Assembly: GCA_002104905.1 (NCBI GenBank)
Contig: MCFE01000011.1
Span: 186,001 to 250,000, forward strand
Origin: Basidiobolus meristosporus CBS 931.73
Lineage: Eukaryota; Fungi; Basidiobolomycota
Direction: 5' to 3'
Length of the DNA: 64,000 nucleotides
Of the stretch, positions 37,413 through 56,827 are shown one piece after another; position 1 is the stretch's first letter, and every line of letters starts with the position of its first letter. The notes below the pieces were generated by a model. That model saw only the letters and a program-made list of their open reading frames with translations, did not search any database and was not told the origin of the DNA. The translations under genes were made by a program, and so were the position numbers.

Positions 37413-39118
37413 ACAAAAGTGAAACGATCTAATACTGACCAACTTAATTGAGCACCCTCTTTCCCCAAGACCTTCGCCCATCACTATTACTTCATGAACC
37501 TAAACCATAATAACATTCGAAACGCATATCTCTTAATACTATTATTATGCTCGTACCTCATATCAAATATCACATTTCTCGGAACAATTACCCTTAGCGT
37601 GTAGTAAACCATCCCACCTCTCATCAGAAGATTCGTCCATCAGAGCCACCGTTATCTAACTGAAAAGCTAAGATTGGATCCAACAACGCATATCAACACT
37701 TGGCATTGTATATAATCGAATAAAGATCCCTTTGAGGAAAATGCACAATACGAAGCACTTGTAGTACGCATTTTTATCAGGTGACACGGTTTAAAACGGC
37801 GATACTCACTGCGAACCCTTCTATCTACTTCCAAGCTTTCGACTCTAGCCCCATTTGCAAATACTAATCTGTAAAGCCCCAAATACATCGAATATACTTA
37901 TCCGGTAGATATCGATTGATATGACCTGAATTCAATTTTGTGAAATAGATTTTCCATCGATCCAACCTTAAAGTTAGCTTGATCCATCCTTGAGCCAGAA
38001 ATCGAACCATCATGGTGATACGATTTTTCTCGGTGTCAGTCATAGCATCCCAAACGAGTGATTGATGGACAACAATATTTTCGTTGCTGAGCACAACCTC
38101 TGAGAAGATTCGGCTATCACTCAGAATAACCTAGTCAAGGAATCACAAAATTCCTCATTTCCAAATATAGGTTGATTGTCCCATGGAATTCCAAGGTGCA
38201 GATATTAACTATCCAAATATGTATCCTGACTTAATTGAAGCCTCGGAGATTGTGGTCTAGCGAAGTATGTGCACCAACTGGCGTTTGTCAAAACGGTATC
38301 CAGCTCAACTTGATTTTTTTACTGGTTTTTTCATTCACTGTCCTTTTTTGTTAGACAACACCTCGCAATGTTTCACTATCAAATCACCTCAACCCACCAG
38401 ATACACATGGCAGTGACAAAAATAAACCTCGATCGCAGGAGGAATACCTCATTTTGAGTGGATCTTATCGATGCCATATCGGATTAGTACTGGCCATTTC
38501 GATTCCTGAAGCGTGTGCACACTTGGATCACTCAGCAGTCGTGCTTCCTGGAAAATTAAGCAAGATGTGTAGTTGAAAACTGCTGCTATGCATTGATATA
38601 TTTATAGTAGCAAGCAAAAGACCAAAATACTACGGAAAGCCTAGATAGATATTGATAGAGATGATGATCCCACTCGAGTTGAAAAGGCGATTCTCTAGTG
38701 GACGGAGCGGAGAAGCAGGTCCTCTCTAGAGATTTACCACACTTACATTTTTACTCATCGTTTCTTTATTAACTAGTTGTGTTGTTTATCGTTGGTATCA
38801 TTTCTGATAACAGATCTATTTCTACATATGTGTTGATTATGGGGGTGACAGTATGGTTGTCCTCATCATATACGTGAGTATGGCGGAGGATCCTGCGAGA
38901 AATAAGACATTTGATCCAGTCTATCACAGGAAATACGCAAATTTAATGTCCAGAGTTTATCTCATCAAGCTTACTGAGGTTCGGGAAAATTCATATATAT
39001 AGCCTTTTCACGTGAGCCACCCAGATCATAAGCTCAAGCCACATTACCTTGTGTTTATTTAGGAGTACAAATTATTTTAAACTGGTGAACTCGATTTCTA
39101 AGGCAATCCGCAGTAGCG

Positions 39119-39346
39119 TCAATGGTTATGGGTAAGTTGTTTTATCAAGGCTTCGTGTTGATTAGCCATAGTGTGATGATAAATTGCTCTTTTAATACTC
39201 AACGGTTGACCAATTGTCATAGGATGAGGGCTATGTATATTTTGGCTTTTGGTGCAACCGTTGGAGTTGAATTCGTATTGTGTATGGGATGGAATCTCGC
39301 CTGTGGAGTTTTGAGCTTCACTCGACGGGGTGTATTGGTTGTACAT
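39119..39346 (-). CDS. Microprotein family member A (75 aa)
   Basis: ATG ORF with TATATATA at 39419-39426. The C-terminal GQPLSIKRAIYHHTMANQHEALIKQLT aligns without gaps to three paralogues. Confidence 0.7.
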   Translation of the reverse strand: MYNQYTPSSEAQNSTGEIPSHTQYEFNSNGCTKSQNIHSPHPMTIGQPLSIKRAIYHHTMANQHEALIKQLTHNH

Positions 39347-40006
39347 ACTAATTTCAAACTAGAATCCAACTCGAGTCAAGAGGATTGGTATGTAATCAAG
39401 AGATTGCGCACGCTTGAGTATATATATGAAAACCACTTCACTATGTGACCAAGCTACGGTAATCTTTACGTCAATTGAGTCAGAGGACGCTATTTATCTA
39501 TTTGTAGCGGCCAAATGAATGTCATACATGGGAATCTGGATCGTCATTTGTTTATATCAAAATTTAGTATTTAAGCGCAGGAGTGAAGCAAATCAGTACT
39601 CAAGGTTCACCATGAAACAGTGATTAACAATCCGTAACGAAGTAACATGCGAAGGTCAAATAGCCAATATACATAGAGGTAGTGGACTGATGAAGTGAAC
39701 GGGAAGAGCGATAGCATAGGTAACATCGCCTTAGAAGTCGTCGATATATAAAAAGCAGCAACCAAGTGTGTTAGGCTATGTGATTGCTAATTCTCTTGCA
39801 TACTCATCAACCATGCTCCACAGAAAATGTATGCGTTAAAGTCTCGTTACGCCATAATTACATCAATTCCTAGAGTAATTATGACGTGGATGAACTAAAT
39901 ATTCTGCTCACGACTCATATAAACCAACAAGCGGCCATCGCTTGTTAGACTCAATTTCTAACCATTGACATACACACCAATCACTATCTGAAGTTCCTTT
40001 AGGAAT
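39347..40006. promoter_or_regulatory. Divergent promoter region shared by microproteins A and B
   Basis: TATA elements at 39419-39426 (for A) and 39918-39923 (for B). CRE-like TTACGTCA at 39466-39473 and TGACGT at 39882-39887 each lie a few tens of nt upstream of their TATA. Confidence 0.5.
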
Positions 40007-40240
40007 ATGACACAACCTTCTCAAAGTATTCTGGACGACTTGAACTACCACTACTACCCATCCAATCATTCAAATATCCTCACCAGACATAACAACACAC
40101 CAAAGTCTCAATGTACCTGGAATGGACGTTTAGTTAGTGTAGAGGAGATGGAATATCATCACAAGATGAAGTGTAAATGCCAAAACTTGATGAGAAAGAT
40201 TACTGACGAGGGCAGATACTCTGACTCGAATGAAGGATAG
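40007..40240 (+). CDS. Microprotein family member B (77 aa)
   Basis: ATG ORF with TATAAA at 39918-39923. Motif TWNGRLVSVEEMEYHHKMKCKCQNLMRKIT. Confidence 0.7.
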   Translation: MTQPSQSILDDLNYHYYPSNHSNILTRHNNTPKSQCTWNGRLVSVEEMEYHHKMKCKCQNLMRKITDEGRYSDSNEG

Positions 40241-40464
40241 CCCTTTTTAGGCTGACTTTGTAACGAATAAAGTGTTAGATTACTTCATGATAATCTGAAG
40301 AATGATTTTATTCATGTCCTTCACGAATGCTATTTTCACCATTATTCCACATGGATTATAATAATACATGGAGCTATGTTTGATTAAACTTCTAGGCAGT
40401 AGCGTTTTATGTAAGGTTTGGTTGGTAGTGGAAACGAAAGGTATGACGAAAATCTTGAGTCATT

Positions 40465-41743
40465 TTACTCGATTAAATTTAAGTTACGTTCAGAAGGTAC
40501 TTGGGCTTCAGCCATCTTTGCAGTTGTATTCACTACAGCACAAAATGTTAATACCAACTCTACTATTTACCAAAAGCAGGTAAAACAACTTACAATGGGA
40601 TTTCAATCCCTTTCCAAAATTAAGGTAACACTGAATAGTCATGATGATAGTTATGAAAATCATGACCAAGGATAACGAAGCTGAAGGTAAACTCTCGGTT
40701 AACGGAATTTCTGGGAAAATTATAAGAGAAAACTTTACCAAAGAAAGATAGGAAAATGATGGTCGATTTGTATTTCCTCTCTGTTCTCTTCTGTTGTATC
40801 CGTATCAGCTTGAAGATAAAGTACCCTGCACCACAACACAAGCCCAACAAGAAGAATACTGTAGCAACTCGGTTCTCACGTCGAATACAGTATATTGCCA
40901 AGACTAGGGTAATTATAATAATAGGAAGCGAGGCTATCGTGATGGGTGTCTCTGGATCGCTATCGCCTAGGACCAATACCAAGAACTGAATACAGAAGCC
41001 GAGGAAGAAAAACACGTCAAGCTTCACCAAAGTGAGGAAGATCTGATATGTGCGATATCGAGCTTCATAGAGCATTTGTTAGGTACTTGCATCAATCCAG
41101 GAAGCCATTTGAAGAAACTTACATTTCAATCTAACATCTGCGCCGATTCGCTTGTAAATATTCCATCCGAATTCCCGGTAAAGACCGTATCCAACCCATA
41201 GATACAGAAGGAAAAAAACGAACATAATAACCGCAATAGAAATGGTCAGATTCTGACACATCTTCCCTGGAGCCCCCTCAATGCCTGAAATTTGGCTCAG
41301 CTGGTGGTATTGGATCAGCGAGTAGCAGAAGCACGACAGGTTGAATAACATAAGTGCAATGATCTGGATTGTGTTTTGGTGTCGCAACTAAATTCAAGGT
41401 CAATCAAAAAGCACTTGCCCGTAAAATATAATGACAACACTTACAGCATCCCATACCAGTACAACCTGGAAAAGTTGTGAGCTAATGAAAATGATGAAAT
41501 ACACTAATAAGGTGTAATTATCAGAGTTGTCATGATAGAGTTTATTTGCGTAGGTATACGCTATAAGGGACTCCAGCACCACTACGACCACGGTCTCCAA
41601 TATCGACAGAACTAACGAAGCTTTGGGGTAGTTCACTTTGAAATTCTAGTGCAGAAAACGGAAGTAACTGAAATATTAACCACTGAGAGCCGCATAGAAT
41701 TGTAGAGCAGTACCAGAGAAGACATGTTCTTAATTACCTTCAT
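40465..41743 (-). CDS. UPF0658-like fungal multi-pass (Golgi-type) membrane protein, 6 exons
   Basis: Introns 41737-41646, 41444-41388, 41122-41063, 40738-40681 and 40593-40533 restore the frame. Motifs QVVLVWDALRHQNTIQII, LYREFGWNIYKRIGAD, YQIFLTLVKLDVFFFLGF.IQ, CIRREN and NFGKGLK. Exon 1 (6 nt) is tentative. Confidence 0.8.
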
Positions 41744-42701
41744 TTTCAAGCGCCTTACAAGCACATATTCCGGGATTTGGTTGGCTTTGAGGAAAATACC
41801 AAGGCAAGGTATGTGATGACTTGTTATGAGAATGAGTTTCAACAGAAATGTACCTCACGATGTTCTTATTAAGGATATTGGGCTAATATGAAAATGGGCG
41901 CATATCCATATTAGAGTTATCATTTTCAAATTGAGACAACCCCCTACTATGTTTTGATTCAAGAGAGCCTGATTGCGAGCACATCAGTACTATATAGAGA
42001 AGCTGTAAATGCTCGATTCATAAACACTTTCACAAACGGTCCTCATGTGAATAGCCAAAGCGCAATGAGATTAGCTGGTTTCCACTGAAACTGAATGCAT
42101 ACACCATGACTTGTGTCGCTTCTATCACAATTTCCTAAACTGTCAGTATCATCTAAGTTGCCACTATCCATATTAGAGCGGCCAGGTCCCATGCGCACTA
42201 TACTATGTCTGGGCTAGGGCATACGGGTTTTTTCAGGAATATCGTTGCCAATGAAATAGCATCGTAATAGCCTCAAACTAGCCCCTACATCTTTGCATCT
42301 CAACTATCTGTCTTAAATAGCACACTTGCCTTTTATACTACTCCAGTCCCATCAAGCTGAAAGCTGAACCAAGCCCGCTGATGTATCTCATGAAAAGCAG
42401 GTTTCAAAACAAGCTATATCAAGAGAAGGAATCATTTTACACTCAATGGCACGCTGTATTCGCTACATGAAGGGCTGTATGCACTCAGTGGTAGAAATAA
42501 ACCAGACCTATTTGCAACATTTCACTAGTTGAAAATCGACTCACAGCACATACTTTCATGTAAGAAAAGACTTTAATCCAGCTTAAACCAGCATGATGCT
42601 TCACCATTTACCAAGCGGACGAAACGAGACTTTTTTAATGTGTGTATTTTCATCGACGATGTGTGACAGACACAACAATGGCCAATTTAGAAATGTGATA
42701 T

Positions 42702-43067
42702 CTAGTTATCTTCGACGACTTCGGTTTGGAGACCCTTGTAGGAAGTGACAGGAACAAATGTCACGTAAGTGTAAAGCTTCTCCTTAGCATCCTCATCGTC
42801 GTTACGTCTACGAGCAAGACGAACACGGATACGACGTTGGACGTTACGAATACCGTGGCTCCATACTTGCTTGTTTACAGAAGGATCCAAGCGGACATCA
42901 ACAGTGCCCATTTGCTTAGTAGCAAAGGCCTTGATGGCCTTCACAGCAGTGGGAGCCTTCTTCTTGAAGGAGCGGTCATGAATGAGCTTGTGAAGATGGA
43001 TAGTGTATTCTCTGGTGACAACGTCAGAAAGAGTAGAGCGCTTGGTACCCTTTTGTTCCTTTGCCAT
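42702..43067 (-). CDS. RPL31: 60S ribosomal protein L31 (eL31)
   Basis: 121 aa intronless ORF with [63 protein letters not shown]. Confidence 0.97.
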
Positions 43068-43677
43068 TGTCTAATGCGACGATGGATGGACAATAAAAGT
43101 AATTCGATGTAAGAAACTGCGCTGCTCTATATTACATTCAGTCGAAAATTTGAAATTCTTACCAAGAATAATCGCTTGGTTGGAAAACTGCGAGAGAAAG
43201 GAAGATGGGAAATTCGTGCGATGGTATTAATTGAATGGAATTCGAATGGCCTTGATCGGAATGAACCAATAGAATACAGTGTTCATTCCCTTTTCAATCA
43301 GGTTGAAAAAAACCAGCACTTATCTTAAATTCACATCATGATGAATACAACTTAACACGATTATTCTGCATTGTATCACGAGTTAAACTAATTACAATTT
43401 CTAAATGTATTTTGTGGTGTTCTCTTAAATTGGGGAATATATGCATTTAGAATGTGGCTTTGATGTTTACAGACATGGTGCTTGTAATACGAAATATTGT
43501 TCCAGATATTTTAGATATTTCTCATGAACAGGTTTGGCTAAACCAATATTTCTTCTCTCTAAAGATTCATAACATCAAGAGCCTTTCGGCACTTTTATCT
43601 ATATTCGCGTTTTTATTTCTTATTTCCTTATACGACCCAAATCCATTTCATTCGGCTGACTTTCTCGAAGACAGTAA

Positions 43678-46600
43678 ATGTCTGATCCACACCAATCAAA
43701 CAAAAGCCTTGGTAATGAGCCTTCAAATGCTTCCGAACTACTGAACAATCTACAGGGCAGGAGGACTGGAAAACTCCCAGAAAAATCGTCTGGTTTTAGT
43801 GGAATTGCAAACTCTACTCGTTCTCTATTTCGTAGCATACTGGGTAATGGTGTAACCAACGGAACAACATCAAACGCTAATCTTGCAAACTTACTTTCCA
43901 ACAAACCCGGAAACTCGACTTCAGTCAACCGAGATACTTCTGGTCCGTTGGAAGGTTCTAGTCAATGGGCAGAGGCCATTAACAATACTTCACACCCTGT
44001 AGCTTCAGGTGGCTCTTCGACTCAATCCAATTTCAACACAATTATTCAACGGGAGGTTACTATACCGTCCCTTGAAGATGAGTTAAATCGTTTCACGGAT
44101 GTCGGCACTTCCTCCAATTCAGGAGAAGGAAATGAATTCGAAAGTATTCATGAAAATACTTTGGATATCTCGCTCGCATCCGAACTTCCAAACTTTTCTG
44201 TTCATAGCGAAAACTCTATCGGGGCCAGATTTCCTCTTAATCGGTTTTCATTGAAATCTGCCCCACATGTTGGTCTATGCGTAAATAGCACTGAACCTTC
44301 GTTAATCACTTCAGACAAAAACACCTCACTCATTGCTGAGAAGAGAGCTTATGCCTGGGCCGATGAATTCCTGAGTCAGTTCAGTGAGAGTTCAGGTGAA
44401 AGTCATACGACGGAGAGTATTGGCAAACACCGCGATGCCCCTAATCTTAATGAAGATACATCAAGTGCCCAGGGTGAGCAATATCTTAACGAATCGCTCG
44501 ACATCCAAAGGAATATTGACGACAAACCATCAAATTCAAATGCACACATTTCATTGGAGAGTATGATCCAAAGCCCAGATTTCTCTACATCTGAGCTGAC
44601 TGTTCCCCTACAGGATGATATGGCTCTAGAAGAAACCTGGCGACAAACAGATTATAATGATGGTATAGACGCTGGGAGCAGCTTGACCCGTGAAGATCCT
44701 CTGAGAGATTATAGTGAATATTCAGACGGTGCTGACATTGTGGCACTCTTGAATGGGGGAAGCTTTCCTGCAGAGTTATTACCGACACCTTTCGATATAT
44801 CTGTTGTAGAGCAATCACCAACGCAAGCCAATAACGTTCACAATGACTCAGAATGGATAGCTGAGTTTAATCAAGAAGATAAAGGACGCCAAGTCGATTT
44901 ATTAACAGAGGCTGAAGGACAGGAAGCAGTAGATTCTTGGGCTTGGACGTCTGAATTTGAAAGGCAATTATCAACCGAACCCGAAATGCCACTTTTCGAA
45001 ACTTCCGAGGTTAACGATGGGGCTGATGTCATTTCATTCCTGAACAGCACAGAATTCCCAGAAGAGCTTTCAGTGCAGCTGGATGAGGCTTCCAATTTCG
45101 CCAACGCGTGGCACGATTCAACCACAGATCAGGAAAATAACTTTGACTGGTCCAGCGAGTTTAATTGTGACCAAAATGTACCCACTAACGAGAGCTGGGA
45201 TGATACAGAGTTGGAGTCTGCTTCCGACAAGGTCTTCGATGAGGCTCAGGCTCAATTCATTTCAAAGCAAAGTGGTGTTTTGCATAGTGGCAATAGCAAG
45301 GATCTTTACCTTGACAATTCTGAAGTAGTGGATGGTGGAGATGTGATCGCTTTCCTGAATAGTGAGCATTTTCCTGATAGTCTTATACCCAGCGAAGACG
45401 CGCTACTATCCGAAGGAATGTCAGAGTTCGAAACCGAGCTGGAGAAAGACACTACAGCAGGCTGGTTAGCAGAGTTTAATCACGCTCACGCTGATATCGA
45501 AGAGAGTGACGGCAATGATGTGGTCGCTTTTCTTAACAGCTCAGATTTCCCCAAGGAACTTACAAGTAATCCTGAGGATATGGCAGATATGGAGCGGGCA
45601 TGGAATTCTTCCCTGGAGGCAGATTGGTCGACTGAGTTTACGAATGCCGACACAGAGGACGATGCTATTAATGATAAATCAATAGGCTCCCCACGTTCAT
45701 TAGACAAGTGGCTAAAAGAGTTCAACGGAAGTGAAACAGAAGACGACTTCTTGAAGCCAGCTATTGCTTCTAACCGTTCAACAGATGTAAATACGTATTT
45801 TGGAGATGGTTATTTCAACTACATTAAGGAAGAAGACACAGGTCTCATTGTGGACGGAGCAGAAGTGGTTGAATTCCTAAGTGCAGGTGCATTCCCTTTG
45901 GAGCTCACTCCAGATATCACAGATTTAGACGAGGTATCGGAAATGGAAGTCAAAGTAGTTGAAAGCTGGTTCAACGAATTTCAAAAATACGATCCAGACT
46001 CGCAAAATTTGGTTCGTGATATCGCTGGAGACAATTCAGACCTTACAGAAGACGAGATGAACCTTCAGTGGGATCACCAATTTCTTCGCCCTCCCTACCT
46101 GGATGAAGATTTAATTTCGGAACTGAGCGAATCCCGCCCACCTACTCCGCCTGATGGTTTTGAGGTGGTGGCATTTCTAAATCACTCTGATTTCCCGACA
46201 GAACTGACAACTAAGACGCCGGTACTCTCCACTCATGACTCAGTCAAAATCCATTCGTTTACGGAGGACCAGGTCAACCAGTCCCATTTACAGCGTTGGC
46301 TTGATGAATTTGAAGACGGCCAAGACGGTACTAAAGAGAATCCAATTGCTGGGTGGGTAAGCGAATTCTCAGAAATCCAGGATCTAATACGTCAGGAGAT
46401 AGATCAGATTGACAACATTGACAATGAGGAGTTGAGTTTCGATACCTATCATGAGTATACATCTGTATTCTCTCCCAGAAATCATGGGTTTTCCATGTAT
46501 CACGGCAGTAGTGGTCAAACGCAAGCGGCCCTGGATTCCTTCGATAGTTGGACCCGTGATTTCCTGCAGGCCGAGTTCGAAAACAAAATCACAGGTGATA

Positions 46601-46950
46601 ATGAAGGGATTTATTCGGAATCTTCTCCATTGAGCGTTCAGCGCTCAGACAACTTGGATGGTACTTCCGATCACATATATATGCTGGACAAAAAGGGATC
46701 AATTGGATCCACAATCAAGGACCTTATTCAGGAGATTGCTAATGAAATTTCGGCAGAGGATTTCCTATATAACTTCGATTATCAAGAGGAGTCTAACAAC
46801 AAGCCCATCACGACGCACCCGACTGTCCAAACGTATGCTTCTGGCGACATCAGATACGAGTTTACAGAGAAAGTTGGCTTTAACTCGGAGGTTACCAAGA
46901 AGAACGCTCTGGATAGACTTCAACAGCTAAGGAAACATATTCTTGGCTAG
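43678..46950 (+). CDS. 1090 aa acidic repeat protein with 12 WxxxF motifs and six DG-x-[DE]-V-V-x-F-L-N-x3-FP-x-EL repeats (peroxin co-receptor-like, no TPR)
   Basis: 3.27 kb stop-free ATG ORF with motifs counted directly in the translation. It ends in the basic amphipathic ALDRLQQLRKHILG. Function is inferred only from the motifs. Confidence 0.85.
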   Translation: MSDPHQSNKSLGNEPSNASELLNNLQGRRTGKLPEKSSGFSGIANSTRSLFRSILGNGVTNGTTSNANLANLLSNKPGNSTSVNRDTSGPLEGSSQWAEAINNTSHPVASGGSSTQSNFNTIIQREVTIPSLEDELNRFTDVGTSSNSGEGNEFESIHENTLDISLASELPNFSVHSENSIGARFPLNRFSLKSAPHVGLCVNSTEPSLITSDKNTSLIAEKRAYAWADEFLSQFSESSGESHTTESIGKHRDAPNLNEDTSSAQGEQYLNESLDIQRNIDDKPSNSNAHISLESMIQSPDFSTSELTVPLQDDMALEETWRQTDYNDGIDAGSSLTREDPLRDYSEYSDGADIVALLNGGSFPAELLPTPFDISVVEQSPTQANNVHNDSEWIAEFNQEDKGRQVDLLTEAEGQEAVDSWAWTSEFERQLSTEPEMPLFETSEVNDGADVISFLNSTEFPEELSVQLDEASNFANAWHDSTTDQENNFDWSSEFNCDQNVPTNESWDDTELESASDKVFDEAQAQFISKQSGVLHSGNSKDLYLDNSEVVDGGDVIAFLNSEHFPDSLIPSEDALLSEGMSEFETELEKDTTAGWLAEFNHAHADIEESDGNDVVAFLNSSDFPKELTSNPEDMADMERAWNSSLEADWSTEFTNADTEDDAINDKSIGSPRSLDKWLKEFNGSETEDDFLKPAIASNRSTDVNTYFGDGYFNYIKEEDTGLIVDGAEVVEFLSAGAFPLELTPDITDLDEVSEMEVKVVESWFNEFQKYDPDSQNLVRDIAGDNSDLTEDEMNLQWDHQFLRPPYLDEDLISELSESRPPTPPDGFEVVAFLNHSDFPTELTTKTPVLSTHDSVKIHSFTEDQVNQSHLQRWLDEFEDGQDGTKENPIAGWVSEFSEIQDLIRQEIDQIDNIDNEELSFDTYHEYTSVFSPRNHGFSMYHGSSGQTQAALDSFDSWTRDFLQAEFENKITGDNEGIYSESSPLSVQRSDNLDGTSDHIYMLDKKGSIGSTIKDLIQEIANEISAEDFLYNFDYQEESNNKPITTHPTVQTYASGDIRYEFTEKVGFNSEVTKKNALDRLQQLRKHILG

Positions 46951-47994
46951 TCCCCTGACGCATGTTCCCAATCAGCCATATCCATCATCACACAATTTTC
47001 AAGTTATACGTTGCACTATTCAAACATCATGCCTATCTTCTATTTGTACATAATAACAGCTATATGTGAGTTTTCTTCAGTGGCATGTATCTTCAAGTAC
47101 TCACCAACAGTAAAGATCAATGATTGTTGGGAAATCATTCAGACTCCCAGTCAAAGTGATAACGATGCGGATATCCATGGCTATAATGCATTGCATCAGG
47201 GAATAGATCTGGAGATTCGCTGAATCCTTGTGCACTTGAGCCGATCAATTTATCCAAGCTGAGCTTAGGGTGAAACTCTCCTTGCTTGCATGTGGTGCTC
47301 ATCAGCAACCGTGGAATCATGGATGTGGCTGCTTCAGTCGTATATTCAATAATCCTTAACAACAACTCGGAAATATATCGACTTAATAGCATCCCCACAT
47401 ACACTTGCCATTGCACATGCCCATGAAGATACTGCTGGTTTTCGGTGCCACTCTAGCTGGATTGGAATGCCTATGGTGCTTTTCGTATATGAGCTCACCC
47501 ATAGAAAGTTCTGAACTGTATCGCGAGATGCAATGCACTTTATCCGCAACTGTGCACCTACCACGAATACGAGTACGTTGACCTCTGAACATGACTCGGT
47601 AAAACCTGGTTGCAGCATATCACAATGTTTCGCCCTTCCAAAAATGCGCATTTTACGCCACCATTCCGGACTTTTCATATTGGAATACTTGGTTTAATAT
47701 AAACCCTAGAAAGTTTCATATCCTTCGATGAACCAGAGACTAAACAAGTTTGTCAGAATCTCAATAAGCACACCCCTTGAAGTAAACCCTGCACATTTTG
47801 CAGTCTCCAACCTCAAACTCACGTTACCTATTTTAATTACTGATATGGATGTAGAAGGTCGAGGAATCAAACAAAAGGACCATGAGCCCGTCAGAAGAAT
47901 GAAAACATCGTTCCCCCTCCACCCTTGATGAAATCTTGTAAATAAGAGTTATTCTTGTTTTTGCGTTTCTTGTCTCACCATTCACCACATAATT

Positions 47995-49628
47995 ATGGGC
48001 GTAAAACAACATTCGGAATATCCCTCCACTGTTGAAAAGGGGTCCAACTCAGAAGACCAGGATTCCAATCCTTTCACTAGATTGCCCGAGACTGATCACG
48101 TCGCTCTACTGTCCACATCCAGCTCCCCCAGAGAGCTAAATGAAGATTCATCCAAAGCTCGCTTCACATCACCCGATATCTCGTACCGTTACCATCCAAC
48201 TTCAATGGAAAAGCCTCGAAGCGCTTCTGCCTCATCGGGAGAAGGCGAGACTTTGCTGAAAAAAATCTGTCTCAATCTGTTTTACATCCTCACCTGGTGA
48301 GTTCACGACCATATTAACAAATGAACCATCCAACTAATTTTCCTCACAGGTATATATTCTCGACCGGGATCTCCTTATACAATAAATGGATGGTAGATAA
48401 AAATCATTACAACTTCCCCTACCCATTGTTCATCACGTCGATGCATCAAGTAATGCAGTTTGTGTGCTCTGGCTTGTGCTTGCTCATCTTCCCAGCTTTA
48501 AGACCCACTATATATCCATCAAAAAAAGACTACACGTAAGTACGAGCGTATGTACGTTTCCCAATCGAATCACCTAACCTTTCCACCCTTGATAATGCAG
48601 AACCAAAATTGTTCCTTGTGGTGTGGCAACTGGGTTCGACATCGGACTTTCTAACTCCAGTCTCAAAACCATTACCTTATCTTTCTACAGTAAGTTCCTG
48701 ATATGCCTCAGAATAATGCTCCACTCGGTCGCTAACCACGAACGTCAACAGCAATGTGTAAATCATCGTCGTTGGCGTTTGTATTAATGTTCGCTTTCAT
48801 GTTCAAACTTGAAAGACCTACGTTCTCTCTGATTGGAATAATATTTATAATATCATTTGGTGTCTTGCTAATGGTCACGACGGAAACATCGTTCGCACTT
48901 GTTGGGTTCGTAATTGTGTACTCGGTTCTTGATATTGGAATCTAACACTCCATCTTTTCATATAGATTCATTCAAGTCATGACAGCTGCACTACTTGGTG
49001 GCCTTCGGTGGTCCTTAACCCAGATCCTACTAAAGAAGGATTCAATGGGACTTCATAACCCAATTCTCACCATCTTTTTCTTGGCCCCCATCATGTGGGG
49101 AGCTTTGCTGCTGTGTGCGTTCTATACCGAAGGCCTCGGAGATATGCTAAACTCTCCATTCTTTAAGGACTTCATCACCTCATCTCACACAATATGCGCC
49201 ATCCTCCTCGGTGGACTGATGGCCTTTTTGATGGTTTCCGCCGAGTTCATGCTAATCTCTCGCACCTCAGTGGTGACACTTTCAGTGGCAGGTATCTTCA
49301 AGGTAAGAAAATTCCTGGGTGTGTAGGTCAGTTCTCAAATACCTAACATGACGAGAACTTTTAGGAAGTCCTTACGATATTTGTTTCGATCGTCACATTC
49401 GGTGACAAAGTGACTGGAGTCAATATTATTGGCTTATGTGTGACTTTATTTGGTATCGGGTTGTATAACTGGCTAAAGATGCACCAAATGAAAAGAAAGA
49501 CTGCCGACGCCGAATATAGCAAAATTAATGATATGGCTCTAGGGGAAGATGGCACGTTTATGCCTAATGCCACCGCAGAATGGGATGAAGAAACGCTAGA
49601 GGTGACTAAAACACAGTGGAACCATTAA
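47995..49628 (+). CDS. Triose-phosphate/nucleotide-sugar transporter family protein (SLC35C2-like), multi-exon
   Basis: Spliced ORFs give ILTW|YIFSTGISLYNKWM, FPYPLFITSMH, VPCGVATGFDIGLSN.S, MCKSSSLAFVL.FAF.FKLE, GGLRWSLTQILL, RTSVVTLSVAGIFK|EV and GL.VTLFGIGLYN. The first introns are 48297-48349 and 48536-48600. The 3' end is uncertain, with a possible further short intron near 49602-49647. Confidence 0.85.
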
Positions 49629-50031
49629 AGCTGACTCAAACAACTAGCCCATCATGTTGGGCGTTGAAAGTCTACTATCACCATACAGACTGTCAGCTTA
49701 CGACCAAGTCCTATTACTGCTACTTCACATGAATTGACTGCTATCATGACTTGTACCTTGCCTGTTCAATTGCCCTCTTTTTATTAAATGTTTAGACGGC
49801 ATATTGCCATTAAACGATCTTCTGCAGAATCCCTTCCGAATCGGGGTAATTCTCCATTTGGATGGATTGCTTCATTCATCGAGAATTCAAAGTGGTCGTT
49901 ACAACATTTGTTCTTTATTGTACATTGTGGTATTGCTAACATAGTGTTCACTTTGGATTATGTTGGATGTGTATGTACATGGGATTACGAAAACCAGTAG
50001 ATCATGTGGCGGATATTTATATAGAGGACCA

Positions 50032-50268
50032 TCAATCGTCACCAGTAAGCTTCATCACGACATACTTGCATTTCATGGCCAGACTGCGATGGTAGATGGC
50101 TTCTTCAACGCTCACGCGTTTGCCGTGGAGGGTGTAACTGACCTTGGAAGAAGGAGGTTTGGTTTGCACAGTCTTAGTGGTTTGTTTGTTTTTGTGGGCG
50201 TTGTAGAACTGGTTGACACTCTGCTGAGCGCAGGAAGTGTTGTTAAAGGATTTACTTTGTTGAGTCAT
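50032..50268 (-). CDS. Microprotein family member C (78 aa from ATG 50268)
   Basis: The ORF track starts at a TTG at 50355, but TATATAAA at 50323-50330 lies inside that extension. The first ATG (50268) gives MTQQSKS, which matches member B (MTQPSQS). Motif KVSYTLHGKRVSVEEAIYHRSLAMKCKYVVMKLT. Confidence 0.72.
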   Translation of the reverse strand: MTQQSKSFNNTSCAQQSVNQFYNAHKNKQTTKTVQTKPPSSKVSYTLHGKRVSVEEAIYHRSLAMKCKYVVMKLTGDD

Positions 50269-51752
50269 GAATAGAAGAACGTGAGATACTTGTGTGTTGG
50301 GAACGGTCAGGGCTTCGGTGGATTTATATATTTGTTGGAAAAAGCTTAGCTCCAATAATGGTGAAGTGTAAGCCCAAATAGGGATGGGAATACCAATGAT
50401 TTCGGTATTTTAGTCACAATCGCTCTATTAAGAAATGCCATGACATCCATTTGTGGATCATGCGTGAAATCTAACTTGTTCACACAGGTAATCACTCACC
50501 ATGTCTCGCACTGGTGGGTGGTTACTAGGGAGATCATGCTGGTGCATAGCGACAATATGACTGGGCTGTATGATGAAAATTTATCCGCTACTTGTGAGAA
50601 AATGACCTCATATCCAAGTAAGGGCTTGGCTTGACTGTAAACAGCCTTTTCGGTAACATTCTGAATGCACCACCCTAAGGTACGGATATTACAAAAGAAC
50701 CCACCAATTTGTCAACTCATGAAACATGGTTAAACCAGTCATGAACAAAAATCGCACCATAGGATAGGTGACTTTTGAGTGCTACTCCCAGACCACTAAC
50801 TGTGGTCAAGATTGTCCATATGGTAAGTATAACGCGCCGCCGACTACTCAATACGCAGAATTCCCCATGCTACCAACATACTTGTTTTCCTTGTCCATAC
50901 TTAGTAACGATGAGTTACACTGACGCTGATATGTTCAAAAGAGTGAAAGGAAATCATGTCGAAAGGAGAATGGTTGGCTATAGATGGTGCACAAAATCAG
51001 CTCAGCCTTATTTGAAGGAAATCCTGTCTCGTGCCATGATTTCGTAAGTATGCCCCTTGTGAGCTCATGGAGTAGTACAAACTCTGCTTATGTCTTGCCT
51101 GATGGCCCAAGTCGAATTCTCCTTCTATTAGATTTACCAGCTTGCATAATCTTCGAATATTCGCAGCAGTTACGGGCCAGATCACGAGGGGCTGGCCTGC
51201 GGATGATCGATACTCAAAGCTTGGCTTTTGCCAATTAAGATTATCCAATCAGCAGGATCCAGACATTAATGGGGACTAGAATGGTTCTGTGCCAATTATC
51301 TACGTGTGAACAGTTCCTTAGACATTTCTAAGGACACTTGGCCTAAGCAAGCCACATATCAGATAAGTGGCTTGAGGACTAAACTGTGTTTCTCCACCTG
51401 GCCCTATCCCGTTCAGATCCCATCACAACATGTCTTATATCGCCAAGAGACAAGAGTTCCAAAGTCGATTGAAGACCCTTTAGCCTATCAATAGTCCAAT
51501 AGTGAACAATGCAAAGCATTTCTCGCAAGTTGGAAAGTTGTTCAAGTTTACCAGTTACAGACAAATCATATCCGATCAATGCATACTAGTGTCCAATTGG
51601 ATGGTAAATCAAATAATATTCTTGGCAATCACTGGTAGATTCAAGGCAATTGTTACGGTAAATGTTATCACAATGATATGGGCTTGACAGAAGAGCTTCT
51701 ATATAAACCTTAGGATTCTCCGTACCTTGGGAAGAAGCACACTCATCATACA

Positions 51753-51980
51753 ATGACCAAGATGGACCTAATCCAGCAACCTTGCACTCACCCTGGCTAC
51801 TTCACAAAGCAACCATGGCTGACACCGGTCAAAGTAGCACCACCTGCTAGCATTTCCGATCTAAAAGTTTCATACACGCTTCGCGGGCAATCCTTGAGCA
51901 TAGACGAGGCGATGTATCATCGCAAGCTTGCATTGGAATATAAAATTAGAATGGTCATCCTGACCCAGAACTCATCTTGA
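51753..51980 (+). CDS. Microprotein family member D (75 aa)
   Basis: ATG ORF with TATATAAA at 51700-51707. Motif KVSYTLRGQSLSIDEAMYHRKLALEYKIRMVILT. Confidence 0.72.
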   Translation: MTKMDLIQQPCTHPGYFTKQPWLTPVKVAPPASISDLKVSYTLRGQSLSIDEAMYHRKLALEYKIRMVILTQNSS

Positions 51981-53375
51981 TTCGAAGGACTAACATCTTA
52001 AATCAAAACACCTCAATGGACACTAGTAGATAAAAGCTAATAAAACTCATTACACTTACAATTACGCTTCCGACAGATTACCACTGCACCCTACGAAACT
52101 GCAAATAGCAGTGTTCTCAATGGGTGCTTGCATTTATGGAAAGCAAAGCTCACGAGACCAGACGTTAAAATAGTAACGGCAACAACCATTAAATTAGGAT
52201 ATACTAAATGTATGTTAATTCATACTTGAAGACTGTTAAATGGAAACCAGCTTCAGCTTTAAATATTCAAATTTCACACACATCATTAATTGGTGCGGTA
52301 TCTTGGGTAGAGGCGGGCGCACACGGTATGAAACAATGGTATGTATATCCAGCTCAAACACCCAGATATCAACTGGAATTGGTTTTGTTGAGGTAGTATG
52401 GTTTCTCTTTACTCAGTGGTTTCACTGATTATCCCAAAATGAATCTATACTTCGTACAATTACGTTGCCTTTACAGTTGGGTAATACAACAGGAGGCATT
52501 GATACCATGTCTTGCAAAGCCGCATTGGACCTGGCTCTATGGTGGTCCAAAAAGAGGGCTACAATGATTGCTTTCTTGAAACGTCAATATATATCAAGTC
52601 CAATCCAAAAAAAAAACCAAGTGGCATATTTAGATATAAGTGACGACTAACTTCGGGACATCCAATCTATTGAGATACACCCACCTGAAAGATGTTTATA
52701 ACAGGTAGCTGTTATAGCGTAGCAAATAATCAATTTGGCACCTAATTATTTATTGACTATTTGGTCAGAAAATTCGTATTGTACTAGATACCGTGAAATT
52801 CATCATATATAGGGAGATACTCGAAAGGCGTCCAGCAGCCCCTAAACTTTACATACATAATTATAGGGCCTCTCTCAACACGTCTATATCATCGCCTTTG
52901 TAAAGTAATGCAAAAATTTCTTTTAGGTCCCCAGTTCTATTTGTTATATTAATAACCAACAACGATAATGGTACAGTTTCAAAAAGTGTCATCAACCTTG
53001 AGATAGCAATATATTGATAGGAAATAGCATTGCTCTGCTTCCAAATTGAATTTCTCCTCAGTATTAATAATACTAACATGATGGCCAGACGCATTAGCTA
53101 TGGAGGGATTTCACACAACATCACACCCATTAATAAAGATTCATTGATACCTGATATTTTGACAACTTTATTCCGGGAAGTGCAGCCATTAATTATCTTG
53201 ACATTTTATTTTTGCATTTGCATTGGAAATTTACAATAAGCAAATAGGTAGATTATTGATGGAATACTTAGCTCACATAATATTTGTTGACTGCTTTGAT
53301 AAGTGGAAAACCTGGGAGTGGGTAACCAGCAAGCTAACGTCATACAACTATTCTGTTTCTTCAATCTACTTTATA

Positions 53376-53525
53376 TTGTAAGCTTCGTAATTACACCTAA
53401 ACATTCACTTAACTTGGTCACTTAAATCATAGTCTACAAATCTTGGAGAATTCTGGCCAAATGCCTTTTCGGGATTTACCTGGAATCTTCTCACCAAACC
53501 ATCAGGTATCCAGAACATAAAATAT
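53376..53525. repeat. Diverged dispersed copy of the 13957-14105 repeat
   Basis: A manual ungapped alignment of 13957-14066 to 53376-53485 gives 78/110 identities. The match continues to atcaggt..cat.aaa after a short gap. Confidence 0.65.
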
Positions 53526-56500
53526 CTCAAAGTAGTCCAAACAGCCCCAAAACTTGCATACATGTTTTTGAGACCTACCTAAACATATTATAGGTGTTTG
53601 TTTTGCCAAGACCATATAAAAGTATAAATATTACTTCTACATTCAATAAATTATGTGAAAACCACATAATCTACTTCTTCTCCTAATCACTCCCAATATC
53701 TCCAAAACTCTTACAACACTTTAAACCCCCCTCCCCCTCCCAAAAAAAAATGTCGCAACAGAACTCCACCGCACTCAGATGTCTCAGCATTACAAATGAC
53801 ATACCTACATACCCTAACAGAATCCAAAATATGCCTATTAGCCGTTAGCACACTCAGTAGAACCGAACAATATCAAATCTATAATTGCAAAGTGTATTAC
53901 CATCACTACAACAATAGAAAAGGATAATTACCTGCAATCACCAGAGGTGATACCTAGTTTGGAATCTTAAATATAAATTTCTTGGTATTCTGGTGGTACT
54001 GCATTTCAATTTTGCTAACACGTTGAGTGCACATCAGCTTGGTCACCTTGCAATAAGGCTCAGACACTTTGAAGTTGGTTGACGTAAAGTTCTCGGTATA
54101 TTTCCCTTAGTACTGAACCATCAGTATTGGTAGGTCATTCAATGTTGAGACTTTCTTCTGGGAGAGATTTGTTGATAATAAGTGAGGAGTGAATTTGTCA
54201 CCTGTTGGTATATCGAGTCACAGTAAAATGTATATATCTTTTGTGCAACTTGGTGAGGATATCTGCTAGAATATGTAGTGAAAGATCGTGAAAAGATATG
54301 TGCAAATGTGAGTTTTGGAACAATATTCGTATAACTTCCACCATTTCCACAACCCTGAACGGTCGATAAATGATGTTGCGAAATTGTTCAAATTGCATTG
54401 ACCAGGCCTCAAACTATATACGAATGACTTGATGTTGAACTAATTAATTGCAACAGCTTCTGGATACAGAAGTCAAAAATGTGAGGTATCCATAATTCAT
54501 TCCTAGTGTATCCTATGCTGTTTGCAATCCCTCTACAGCCACCATATTCGACCGTCATGACACGGTAGAACTTCCAATAGCTTGGGGCACTTTAAAACCA
54601 CTGTAAGATTGGTATGTACAGTCGATCTTGAAATATATTTCCACGGATTATCTGCAGTGAAAAGGTGTCTGGCTATCACTTAGAAATATTGCCTAAATAA
54701 CATGAATATGATATGCATTGATAATTATAGGAACCTGCTAAGTTCCAGTTTCCACAATACTTCCCTTCCTGGGCTCATAGGAACACTAAATATGGATGGC
54801 GGTCTCAAAACCTAGCACATACCAACCATGAAACCTTTTAGTGAATCAATCCATAGGAGTAGGGTATGGAATAATCCCTTGATGCTCATTTTGTTGATAA
54901 TATACTTGCATTTTCGCCATCGCCAATATGAACATGTCTGAGCATTCATCAACACACATGTGCATAATTTCTACATCTTGGTGGCCATTAGCCCCACCTA
55001 AATCCCCAAAACACTGGTTTGATACCTGTTGTCGCTTATCCCGATCATACAACAACCTAACAAACAACATTCGTTCCTGCTAATATCAAACATCAACAAA
55101 GATATCATCGCGCTCACGGATCCTGTGCTTAGTTGCCAAGATAGATCACAATACAACCAACGCATCCCGTTTAGACCACCAAGACGGGGAAGTCAGTGTA
55201 TGTAGTATTTCTGACCACTTATCCGCCGTTGTTTGGTATGATTGGTACAATTGGGAGCTTATGAGGTAGTCTTCGCTGGCGGCGGTATCCTTCCGGGTCC
55301 TTTTTGTCATGTGTCGAATACACGCAGATATCCTTGGCATTTCTCAAGAATCCTGAGAGCGACCAGCTATGTGCCGAGCCAAAACATTCGCTGATGGAAA
55401 TTTAGATACCAATCTACATACACACTGAAACCTGTCAATATTGAAGATCATGACATGACATCCATTTACTAGCCTATCCTTATGAACCGGTAGAATTCCC
55501 TTCGAATAAGTATACCGCCAGTATCACATGGGCATCACTTTTAATGTGCTGAGTGAGCAGTAATCAAGTATGTTGCCAGATTATAGAATACGCTGAGGTC
55601 TGCACAGCATGATTATAATATGAACAATGATGTATGACACCTATATACGTCTGATTCCACATCACATACAACCTATACTATTGCTGGACTACTGAGCAAG
55701 ATTCGCCATTACGATTGATTAGAACTCTTGATAAAATAGGCCATCAATCTATTTCAGAGAATCCCTATTGATTGGCCAGGTGGCCGATTTGTGACTGGCA
55801 TTTCCAAATCCTTCACCGTGACTGAGCTTAGCCACTCTACCCCAGAGCCACAGTTGCATAAATGGGGTCCAACTTACCCAAGAAGTGCCCTCCAGTCACC
55901 AGTTGCGTGGACGCCAATCATTCTTTAATAGAGCGCAGCAGTCATGTCACTTTTAACATGCCAGAAACAATACCTGTTGGCGGAAGAGGTTGGTGCAAAG
56001 AATTGTGATGTATTAATAGAATGTACTTGATAGCATCGATATAGCTTAACTGTTGTCTGGCTCCGTGTTCTTCGCTTTCAATGAAGCACAGCTTTATTGG
56101 GTTTCACGCATTCAAATTGATTTGGCTCCATGAGCAGCGTGATTGGTTATCTGCCGCCCCTTCCCTCCCTATTTCCTCTGGATGCTCCGAAATATCCATT
56201 CTGCACTGCCCCAATCCATAAGAGCCGTGGTTTATTCATCTGGAACCTTGTGCCACATGATATATATAGAACGTCGTAATGGTGGTGCCGAGGCTCTGAT
56301 TGGAGTTCGATGTGCCATAGATTGGACCTTGTAACTTCAAGTGATTTGCATCTCCACTTCAGCTGCCTATTGGATTCTACGATACTCTAGGCAAATCTCT
56401 GTAAACTCTTTGAGAAAGATTGCCGCATGTCACTTTTGCTCAACAAACTGGATAAACCATGTCCACACAGTGCCGGGGAGTAGAGGGGATGGTGAATTCG

Positions 56501-56827
56501 GTATGAGACTTGTGTTCATCAAAGGTTTACTGATCAAATATAACCCGGATAATTGTGTTGACATCATCAAAAGCGCCAGGAAGGTGGTAATCAAATATTA
56601 TGAATAGGGGAGGGGAATTTCAGCACGAAACAAGAACGAGGTATTAAGCAAATACTATTATGTATCTTCAAAAAACATTATTTATCCTGACGGGGAAGCG
56701 AAGGGATTAGATCTTCGCAAATAAAATTTTCATGAAGGAATGAAGATGTACTGGGGTAACTGAGTGGGATGTATAGGAGATGTTGATGAACAAGTGATCG
56801 CAAGCAACAAAAACCTCACAGAGATGC

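Follow-up and report, generated by a model that had tools for sequence, protein, structure and literature searches.

Four short ORFs in a stretch of 64,000 nucleotides of Basidiobolus meristosporus CBS 931.73 DNA, which was analysed as a whole and is referred to here as the window, raise the question whether they are accidental reading frames or members of one gene family and, if the latter, what their products may do. None of the four, designated A, B, C, and D, is called in the public annotation of B. meristosporus. Results of our analysis indicate that A-D are very probably intact, intronless, and independently promoted protein-coding genes of a microprotein family (61-91 aa) that is so far limited to Basidiobolus.

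The coordinates and lengths of the four ORFs agree exactly with those given in an earlier, sequence-only reading of the window (Table 1), and the C-terminal block described there as shared without gaps and with identical spacing is indeed present in A-D. The ORFs are arranged in two head-to-head pairs, A/B and C/D, the divergent partners being separated by 660 bp and 1,484 bp, respectively, from start codon to start codon. The ATG start of C lies inside a longer TTG ORF. Additionally, A and C have long antisense ORFs (108 and 104 aa).

Table 1. Positions of the four ORFs and of putative regulatory elements in the window, and of the orthologous ORFs in B. ranarum
Feature	Position	Strand	Remarks
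Gene A	39119..39346	-	75 aa, single exon, stop codon included
Gene B	40007..40240	+	77 aa
Gene C	50032..50268	-	78 aa
Gene D	51753..51980	+	75 aa
TATA box of A	39419..39427	-	~80 nt upstream of ATG; B. ranarum orthologue: -89
TATA box of B	39918..39923	+	-89
TATA box of C	50323..50330	-	~-62; B. ranarum orthologue: -63
TATA box of D	51700..51707	+	~-53; B. ranarum orthologue: -64
Conserved upstream element of A	39445..39487	-	TGACTCA then GACGYAAANATTACC; core 39458-39472
Candidate AATAAA-type signal of A	39054..39059	-	60 nt past stop; consensus match only
Candidate AATAAA of B	40266..40271	+	26 nt past stop; consensus match only
Candidate AWTAAA of C	49914..49919	-	113 nt past stop; consensus match only
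Candidate AATAAA of D	52039..52044	+	59 nt past stop; consensus match only
Orthologue of A	L004:10733-10957	-	annotated, K7432_001789; 49% aa identity, no indel
Orthologue of B	L004:12060-12284	+	unannotated; 55% identity, residues 1-13 identical; 70% DNA identity, limited to ORF
Orthologue of C	L002:10817-11050		unannotated; 62% identity, no indel
Orthologue of D	L002:8750-8995		unannotated; 47% identity, indels are multiples of three

When the window was translated in all six frames, the strict motif G-x2-[LV]-S-[IV]-x4-Y-H was found four times, exclusively in A-D. The earlier reading had left room for the motif being frequent by chance, and this is not the case: its expected count in first-order Markov simulations (300 runs) was 0.007, with a maximum of one per run. 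Since the motif was derived from the data themselves, leave-one-out profiles were also run, in which each ORF was compared with a profile of the other three, and the targets were all 1,576 stop-to-stop segments of the window that have 25 aa or more. The E-values obtained for A, B, C, and D were 1.3e-5, 1.6e-6, 7.4e-12, and 1.3e-8, respectively, and those of the next-best segment were about 0.2-0.6. Pairwise BLASTP comparisons yielded E-values of 1e-12 (C-D), 1e-8 (B-C), and 6e-6 (A-D). No DNA-level repeat connects the A-D loci, and the identity of the C and D blocks is 0.67, 0.77, and 0.37 at the first, second, and third codon position, respectively.

Orthologues, family size, and selection

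Each of the four ORFs has a B. ranarum orthologue in conserved synteny and orientation. The order of genes in the relevant B. ranarum regions is 257aa - E1 - A' - B' - DUF7789 - RPL31 (L004) and RING - D' - C2 - C' - TPT (L002), with orientations as in the window, and the orthologue of C is adjoined by an older paralogue of C type, P0002 (KAK9719957.1). While A-D are all related, as had been proposed, the number four applies to the window only; the family is genus-wide, and at least 15 members were found, of which B. meristosporus has 5 and B. ranarum has 10. The paralogous blocks L008 and L011 contribute Bm_F, Br_F, and Br_C3, and the fifth B. meristosporus member, which is encoded on another contig, is likewise absent from the public annotation. 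At least five ancient lineages can be distinguished in the family, namely A/F, B, C, D, and an 'E' type, the last observed in B. ranarum alone; these lineages are older than the split of B. meristosporus and B. ranarum and than an older duplication of the whole RING-TPT-RPL31-DUF7789 block.

Half of the B. ranarum members are missing from the annotation of that species (GCA_040143965.1), and the other five (KAK9719957.1, KAK9759596.1, KAK9759595.1, KAK9727456.1, and K7432_001789) are deposited as hypothetical proteins with no name, domain, or function attached. These proteins of 69-91 aa belong to the same family as A-D; they are encoded by single exons, start with M-T-x, and have a polar tail followed by the G-x3-S-x5-Y-H...A...[LI]-T block. 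Their presence in GenBank makes the family unnamed rather than unseen, and the view of it as undescribed holds only in so far as it has no name and no match in Pfam, PDB, or fold libraries, at the level of either sequence or predicted fold.

The genes neighbouring the family members across the loci encode TPT, RING, RPL31, DUF7789, and UQ_con proteins; TPT, RING E3, RPL31, and DUF7789 point to no pathway. On the far side of C/D are genes of a PA-RING protein and a ZIP transporter, together with an unassigned ORF of 213 aa. A sex locus of the Mucoralean type (TPT - HMG gene - RNA helicase) was considered and rejected, as neither an HMG gene nor a helicase gene flanks TPT.

In the orthologue pairs of A-D, synonymous differences are saturated (pS 0.71-0.85), and pN is 0.24-0.38 (0.71 and 0.28, respectively, in the case of A). 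The C-terminal block is more conserved than the N-terminal half (pN 0.06-0.28 vs. 0.25-0.54), and in the block of the C pair pN is 0.06 vs. pS of 0.69. The values for RPL31, which served as a control, were 0.51 (pS) and 0.01 (pN). With only two species and saturated dS, the dN/dS ratio can be bounded, at roughly <0.2. The cross-species blastn signal is limited to annotated genes, the A-D ORFs, and one promoter block. Of all frames, the sense frame alone is open in every one of the 12 members tested, the positions of start and stop codons are conserved, and the M-T-x starts are kept across lineages. Judged from these sequence comparisons, purifying selection acts on the A-D proteins between the two species, and orthologues with intact frames at saturated synonymous sites bear out the earlier claim of real genes under selection.

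The TATA box claimed upstream of each ORF could be found, in TATA-like form, in all four cases. In the whole family, TATAWA is present at -51 to -91 in 13 of the 15 genes, as compared to 5.4% of random positions, and its distances match between orthologues. The TATA box of B is included in 14 nt (CTCATATAAACCAA) that the B. ranarum orthologue shares without any difference, at -90. The upstream element of A (~44 nt) is the sole intergenic DNA that can be aligned between the two species at the A/B locus. Its 15-mer also precedes B. ranarum A1 (L004:11106-11120) and the paralogue Bm_F (L008:12666-12680), with no further copies in the ~190 kb of loci examined.

Predicted fold and searches for named relatives

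We define members of the family as single-exon, stand-alone ORFs that span 61-91 aa and start with M-[TQSY]-x. By this definition, their N-terminal half is polar and poorly conserved, and their C-terminal block, G-x3-[SN]-x5-Y-H-x3-A-x9-[LI]-T, leaves 3-13 residues to the stop. The products of A-D start with MYNQ, MTQP, MTQQ, and MTKM, respectively, and the fraction of Q/N/S/T/H/P in their N-terminal halves is 0.42-0.64. All four fit the block definition, with profile E-values of 1e-25 to 2e-29 (12-sequence model); in B, the near-invariant Ala is replaced by Lys. Only Gly, Tyr, His, and Thr are invariant across the members. The seemingly invariant Ser is replaced by Asn in lineage F of both species (Bm_F and Br_F), which suggests that it is probably a helix N-cap and not an obligatory phosphosite. 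The Thr reported to precede the Gly by 2-3 residues is present in A-D but not in every relative found later.

AlphaFold2 models of C and A, built on 12 sequences from a single genus, comprise a disordered polar N-terminal tail (pLDDT ~50) followed by a beta-hairpin and a helix of 22 residues, with pLDDT of 84-94 across the block. Column-by-column conservation reveals a hydrophobic stripe on the helix (positions 54/57/60/63-64/67/70-71/74). The constrained block of about 35 residues is thus predicted to form a beta-hairpin with a tight two-residue turn and a 22-residue helix. The invariant Gly would form the turn of the hairpin, the N-terminus of the helix would be capped by the Ser (by Asn in lineage F), and Tyr-His, Ala, and [LI]-Thr would be located on or beside the continuous, 3-4-spaced hydrophobic stripe. 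These models agree with the previously suggested strand-turn and amphipathic helix; the helix is, however, not consistently basic, as the pI of the block ranges from 6.8 to 9.8.

The topology of the block, a two-stranded hairpin and then a helix within ~30-35 residues, is like that of C2H2 zinc fingers. In contrast to them, the family is devoid of Cys2His2 ligands, its helix is about twice as long, and no match was found in the fold search. The C2H2-type beta-beta-alpha assignment was rejected, because there is no conserved Cys and a single invariant His in place of the Cys-x2-4-Cys...His-x3-5-His pattern.

When 1.84 billion proteins were searched exhaustively with a profile, four true matches were obtained, all of them small B. 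ranarum proteins and none from outside the genus, and the search of 5.8 billion with a 12-sequence profile yielded one extra match, again from B. ranarum. In the case of Pfam-A, no family matched more than one of the 12 members tested and no score reached the gathering threshold. The similarity of a helical stretch of C, and of no other member, to SF1-HH (PF16275; E 0.082, 13.7 bits vs. the threshold of 29.3) was treated as noise; an SF1 structure was at rank 4 in Foldseek, with E of 9. CaM-KIIN (PF15170) was rejected as well, being matched by C only at 12.2 bits vs. the gathering threshold of 27.

Alternative explanations

The predicted N-cap is also the residue on which an explanation centred on kinases depends, namely, that the proteins are substrates or pseudosubstrate inhibitors of PKA or another basophilic kinase, recognized through an R-R-x-S-[IV] site. 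The consensus of PKA is a Kemptide-like R-R-x-S-hydrophobic sequence or R-R-V-S-V of RII type. About half of the members have the textbook site: R-R-x-S-[IV] or K-R-V-S-V occurs in 6 of the 15, R-[RK]-L-S-N variants lacking the hydrophobic +1 residue in two further ones, and R or K at -3 in 10 of the 15. However, the motif is not family-wide. The D lineage has Q-S-L-S, A has Q-P-L-S, lineage F has Asn for Ser in both species, and the site is absent from A, D, and Dr. Helices are preferentially N-capped by Ser as well as by Asn, and capping-box Glu or Gln is present at +3, so that conservation of the Ser can be explained structurally. There is also no match to Pfam PKI or another inhibitor family and no homology to R subunits, and we consider this explanation improbable.

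The layout of the proteins, with one conserved end and a variable polar half, would also be compatible with precursors of secreted or processed peptides (RiPP, pheromone, or effector-like), in which the conserved block is a recognition sequence and the variable half is the product. The birth-and-death type of family turnover and the unusual secondary metabolism for which Basidiobolus is known (PMC7466969) count in favour of this possibility. Nevertheless, the polar N-termini contain no signal peptide, we found no conserved Cys, Kex2-type or CAAX motif, or repeated cores, and no gene of a tailoring enzyme, peptidase, or dedicated exporter is present beside either locus in either species. The constrained part, according to the models, resembles a folded mini-domain, and we regard such precursors as highly improbable.

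Slightly less credible still is the assumption that the ORFs are terminal exons, fragments, or relics of larger, mis-annotated genes. The frame of C is open for 47 codons further upstream of its ATG, and there is an overlap between the Br_F ORF and the 3' end of a gene model (359 aa) annotated in B. ranarum, but such upstream extensions are not conserved, whereas the M-T-x start is. The TATA boxes of 13 of the 15 genes are 51-91 nt before this ATG, five B. ranarum members are modelled in GenBank as single exons, and cross-species DNA similarity ends at the ORF edges, the 44-nt promoter element being the only other conserved sequence within 1-2 kb.

The long antisense ORFs of A and C could be taken as a sign of conserved non-coding DNA, of a non-coding RNA with incidental ORFs, or of transposon-derived sequence. 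Third codon positions are randomised and first and second ones conserved, though, the antisense frames are closed in orthologues, no Rfam family or tRNA was found, and the syntenic positions in two species are accompanied by neither flanking repeats nor multiple DNA copies, which leaves these possibilities a very slight probability. Chance similarity of four noise ORFs, to which their small size and the weak A-B and B-D similarities (2.5e-5 and 0.018, even in the pairwise search space) might point, is effectively refuted by the syntenic orthologues with intact frames at saturated neutral divergence, as well as by the excess of the strict motif and by leave-one-out scores 14-34 bits above the best noise.

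Possible function and significance

The explanation of A-D as genes of one family with the predicted fold is the best one overall, and we consider it likely; the mechanism outlined below is more doubtful. According to it, each protein would consist of a fast-evolving, polar, disordered tail and the strongly constrained block that follows it. As the module is too small to bury its own hydrophobic stripe, it would most likely work by pairing, and its partner may be another copy of itself, the product of the adjacent paralogous gene (A with B, C with D), or some other cellular partner. We tentatively propose that the hairpin-helix is a partner-binding or dimerising module and that the proteins are small intracellular adaptors or regulators rather than enzymes or secreted peptides. 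The near-universal TATA boxes and the conserved bZIP-type element upstream of A/F genes suggest that expression is under tight control, perhaps specific to stress or to a particular stage. The R-R-x-S-[IV] motif of about half of the members might, although this is doubtful, provide optional control by a basophilic kinase. It is somewhat more doubtful whether neighbour paralogues could be co-regulated and form obligate heterodimers via their hairpin-helices, being switched on by a bZIP-type stress or developmental signal and some of them tuned by phosphorylation of the helix-capping Ser. If true, this would represent a previously unknown, Basidiobolus-specific class of two-subunit microprotein regulators.

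The importance of the finding is moderate, as the family touches no long-standing question. It may serve as a clean example in which microprotein genes are validated without expression data, by comparing species whose neutral divergence is saturated, and it provides a concrete set of targets for RNA-seq re-annotation, interaction screens, and structure determination of a 35-residue autonomous or dimerising fold. What is well supported is a family, so far restricted to one genus, whose sequence motif is new and whose predicted hairpin-helix module is minimal; it is an addition to a lineage of fungi in which small genes are for the most part unannotated.

The shared C-terminal block

The four microprotein ORFs, A to D, lie exactly where the sequence-only reading had placed them and form two head-to-head pairs, A/B and C/D, the start codons of which are 660 bp and 1,484 bp apart, respectively. 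Public gene calls in this stretch of the window comprise a 263-aa gene, a DUF7789 membrane protein, RPL31, a 1,090-aa protein, a TPT transporter and a PA-RING protein, and none is placed at any of the four loci. The A-D sequences were also absent from a collection of 15 billion proteins in an exact-sequence look-up. The 1,090-aa protein is encoded by a single exon, has no Pfam domain, forms a singleton cluster in the protein collection and has an orthologue at the matching position in B. ranarum. Between D and the PA-RING gene, neither a called gene nor any ORF of at least 90 aa is present; this interval falls inside a 7.2-kb uncalled stretch separating TPT from RING.

Features of the window and of related loci
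Feature	Sequence	Position	Strand	Length	Amino acid identity to B. ranarum orthologue	Indels relative to orthologue
ORF A	window	39119-39346	-	75 aa	49%	none
ORF B	window	40007-40240	+	77 aa	55%	none before C-terminal tail
ORF C	window	50032-50268	-	78 aa	62%	none
ORF D	window	51753-51980	+	75 aa	47%	multiples of three only
Antisense ORF wholly over A	window	39122-39448	+	108 aa		
Antisense ORF wholly over C	window	49960-50274	+	104 aa		
Helix-like stop-free segment	window	38811-38999	+			
1,090-aa protein	window	43678-46950	+	1,090 aa		
Stretch from D to PA-RING gene	window	51981-56827		~4.8 kb		
A/C-rich element	window	53527-53721		~190 bp		
Block-like segment	window	53957-54106	-			
Br_F ORF	L011	13112-13342	-			
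Gene model overlapping Br_F	L011	13216-14360		359 aa		
Matches of A/C-rich element	L002	near 1000-1171, 7944-8133, 12243-12367, 12955-13063				

The C-terminal block proposed to unite the four ORFs was confirmed by a regular expression, by simulation and by profile searches. The expression matches only at A-D in the six-frame translation of the window; these four real matches compare with 0.007 per window in simulated sequences of the same dinucleotide statistics. Since the block pattern was derived from the data themselves, leave-one-out profiles, each made from three of the members, were also run against the complete set of 1,576 stop-to-stop segments in the window. The omitted ORF was the top new match every time (A, 1.3e-5; B, 1.6e-6; C, 7.4e-12; D, 1.3e-8), and the best unrelated segment gave E values of 0.2-0.6. 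No DNA repeat linking the A-D loci was found, and the identity of the C and D blocks is 67%, 77% and 37% at first, second and third codon positions, respectively.

With several profiles, the best-scoring non-member (E 0.1-0.4) is a block-like segment in the gene-poor stretch after D. It has R-V-S-x5-Y-H at the family spacing, lacks the Gly, is preceded by a stop and may represent a fifth copy that has degenerated. Another segment, stop-free and convergent with A, ends in Y-H-R-K-x-A ... L-T and resembles the family helix. It lies at the site of an extra E-type gene of B. ranarum (P0006), has no hairpin and scores non-significantly (E about 0.5-2.4); it may be a decayed relic. A search for relics of the extra B. 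ranarum copies (an E-type gene next to A; C2 in the interval from C to D) gave nothing significant, these two segments being weak candidates.

Orthologous and paralogous loci

Synteny between B. meristosporus and B. ranarum is conserved around A-D. In the B. ranarum locus L004, a 257-aa gene (+) is followed by E1 (P0006, +), A' (-), B' (+), DUF7789 (-), RPL31 (-) and the orthologue of the 1,090-aa gene, where primes denote orthologues of the window ORFs. In L002 the order is RING, D', C2 (the C-type paralogue P0002, KAK9719957.1), C' and TPT, with relative orientations as in the window. B', C' and D' are likewise without annotation in B. ranarum, and a small contig of this species, L003, carries a second, convergent E/A-type pair. 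The A/C-rich element of the window is 67-72% identical to four separate places in L002 and has no tRNA or Rfam match; it looks like an interspersed repeat common to both species.

A paralogous copy of the entire block, with Zip, RING, UQ_con, TPT, RPL31, a DUF7789-like gene, a 245-aa gene and a 215-aa gene, is located on B. meristosporus contig MCFE01000404.1 (L008). It carries Bm_F, a fifth B. meristosporus member of 61 aa (E 1.4e-12), and its B. ranarum counterpart, L011, carries Br_F plus an additional C-type gene, Br_C3. The presence of both subfamilies in both paralogous blocks indicates that the family predates the block duplication. The order Zip, RING, TPT, RPL31, DUF7789, 245/263-aa and 214/215-aa genes is common to the window (~36.6-64 kb) and L008/L011, the 1,090-aa gene is missing from the paralogous block, and RPL31 occurs at at least five loci in B. 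meristosporus. The large paralogous blocks and the RPL31 copies fit extensive segmental or whole-genome duplication. In L011, the 5' part of the Br_F ORF is overlapped by a 359-aa gene model. The B. meristosporus counterpart of this model is a 245-aa gene that stops ~760 bp short of Bm_F, and the B. ranarum model probably extends too far.

Coding evidence and promoters

In the orthologue pairs of A-D, saturated synonymous divergence (pS 0.71-0.85) is accompanied by a pN of 0.24-0.38, which amounts to 0.06-0.28 in the C-terminal block and 0.25-0.54 in the N-terminal half; the RPL31 control gave a pS of 0.51 and a pN of 0.01. At this divergence, blastn matches between the syntenic loci are confined to annotated genes, to the microprotein ORFs and to a single intergenic block of 44 nt. 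The sense frame is the only stop-free one in all 12 members tested. Although long antisense ORFs lie wholly over A and C, they are closed by stops in the B. ranarum orthologues, and were therefore rejected as true genes and regarded as by-products of sense codon usage. The start M-T-Q/K/N/E is kept in 11 of the 15 members of the family alignment, B and B' share identical first 13 residues, and the open frame 5' of the ATG of C is not conserved. No Rfam families or tRNAs overlapping the A-D region were found.

In 13 of 15 genes the ATG is preceded, at 51-91 nt, by a TATAWA element, compared with 5.4% of random positions; the distances are nearly equal in orthologues (A, -80/-89; B, -89/-90; C, -62/-63; D, -53/-64). 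AWTAAA occurs within ~110 nt past the stop in 14 of 15. The window contains 62 ORFs of 60-95 aa that begin with ATG, and only 4 of them, presumably A-D, combine the two signals. As proposed in the sequence-only reading, A-D are thus very probably real genes under selection, each protein-coding, single-exon and independently promoted, judged by their saturated pS and low pN, single open frame, conserved starts and syntenic orthologues. On this gene evidence, readings of A-D as chance ORFs, as exons belonging to larger genes, as conserved non-coding DNA or as transposon-derived sequence were rejected or considered unlikely. RNA-seq data for B. meristosporus CBS 931.73 are publicly available (PMC7466969).

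A search for a promoter motif common to all members yielded TATA as the only general one. The sole conserved intergenic block upstream of A includes TGACTCA, a candidate AP-1/Gcn4-type bZIP site, followed by GACGYAAANATTACC. The block was defined from A and A' before its 15-mer was found at an equal distance upstream of the paralogue Bm_F; this 15-mer has no further occurrence in ~190 kb of fetched loci, which points to a putative shared regulator of the A/F lineage. TGASTCA itself is at background level in the window (13 observed, 11 expected), and TGACTCA in the first codons of C and P0003 was dismissed as a promoter element, since it simply encodes Met-Thr-Gln. In yeast, promoters that contain TATA typically drive genes whose regulation is tight and whose expression often responds to stress. 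By analogy, the TATA promoters suggest condition-specific expression of the family.

Predicted module and apparent genus restriction

AlphaFold2 was run with a 12-sequence alignment on C and on A, the most divergent member. In both models residues 1 to ~40 are disordered (pLDDT about 50) and are followed by a confident module (pLDDT 84-94) made up of a two-stranded hairpin, the turn of which has two residues, and a helix of ~22 residues. The strand-turn and amphipathic helix anticipated from the sequence thus stand in outline; the description of the helix as basic holds for the C/D clade only (block pI 6.8-9.8). When the family alignment is read on the model, the invariant Gly takes the second place of the turn (mostly Asn-Gly or His/Arg-Gly), the inward side of the strands is formed by Leu47 and Val/Leu52, and Ser53 is at the helix N-cap, with Glu/Gln at +3 forming a capping box. 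In lineage F of both species Ser is replaced by Asn, which is also a favoured N-cap residue and so supports a structural role of this position. Conserved hydrophobic or small residues occupy positions 54, 57, 60 (an invariant His beside invariant Tyr59), 63-64 (Leu/Met and a near-invariant Ala), 67, 70-71 and 74, next to the invariant Thr75, and their 3-4 spacing makes a single continuous stripe over six helical turns. No signal peptide, transmembrane segment or conserved Cys is present in the family.

The hairpin, of two times three residues, would be too small to cover this hydrophobic stripe. The module would therefore be expected to form pairs with a second copy of itself, with an adjacent paralogue or with another protein, and to carry the disordered tail as a variable appendage. 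Such pairing is a tentative proposal. Heterodimers of neighbouring paralogues (A/B, C/D) would be its natural version because the divergent arrangement of these genes is kept between species; we consider them unlikely, and the unchanged gene order could equally reflect simple inertia. The textbook PKA-type consensus R-R-x-S-[IV] occurs in 6 of 15 members; two more carry R-[RK]-L-S-N, in which a hydrophobic residue at +1 is lacking. The consensus is missing from A, D and D', lineage F cannot have it, and it may thus be an optional regulatory layer at most. A RiPP or pheromone precursor was rejected, as signal and processing motifs are lacking and no tailoring genes adjoin in the four loci, and so was a mucoralean TPT-HMG-helicase sex locus, as neither an HMG gene nor a helicase flanks the TPT gene.

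The view that the family has no recognised name was borne out, since Pfam, PDB sequence profile, Foldseek against PDB, VIA-align wide (best Z 3.1), and ESM Atlas fold and feature searches gave no usable match; the sole sub-threshold score was SF1-HH (E 0.08, in 1 of 12 members). The profile of the C-terminal block, scored against each of 1.84 billion representative proteins without length restriction, gave five matches at E <1e-3, four of them B. ranarum hypothetical proteins of 69-91 aa. The fifth, P0005, an 842-aa coiled-coil repeat protein (E 2.6e-6), was rejected as a compositional or coiled-coil artefact, its seven repeated partial matches covering the helix only. A 12-sequence profile retrieved only B. 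ranarum proteins from 5.8 billion and newly added K7432_001789. A word-based search with C as the sole query gave no match, and two metagenome scans, with the C-type and the A-type alignment, gave no relative.

The family numbers at least 15 members, five of which were already deposited in GenBank as hypothetical proteins. In its tree, the C/D group stands apart from the A/B/E group and the B. meristosporus genes are each placed beside their B. ranarum orthologues; the deep branches are weakly supported. As far as these searches indicate, the family has no name, domain entry or literature, and no detectable relative outside Basidiobolus. Small-protein families restricted to one lineage are a familiar phenomenon, and A-D represent a well-supported new family.
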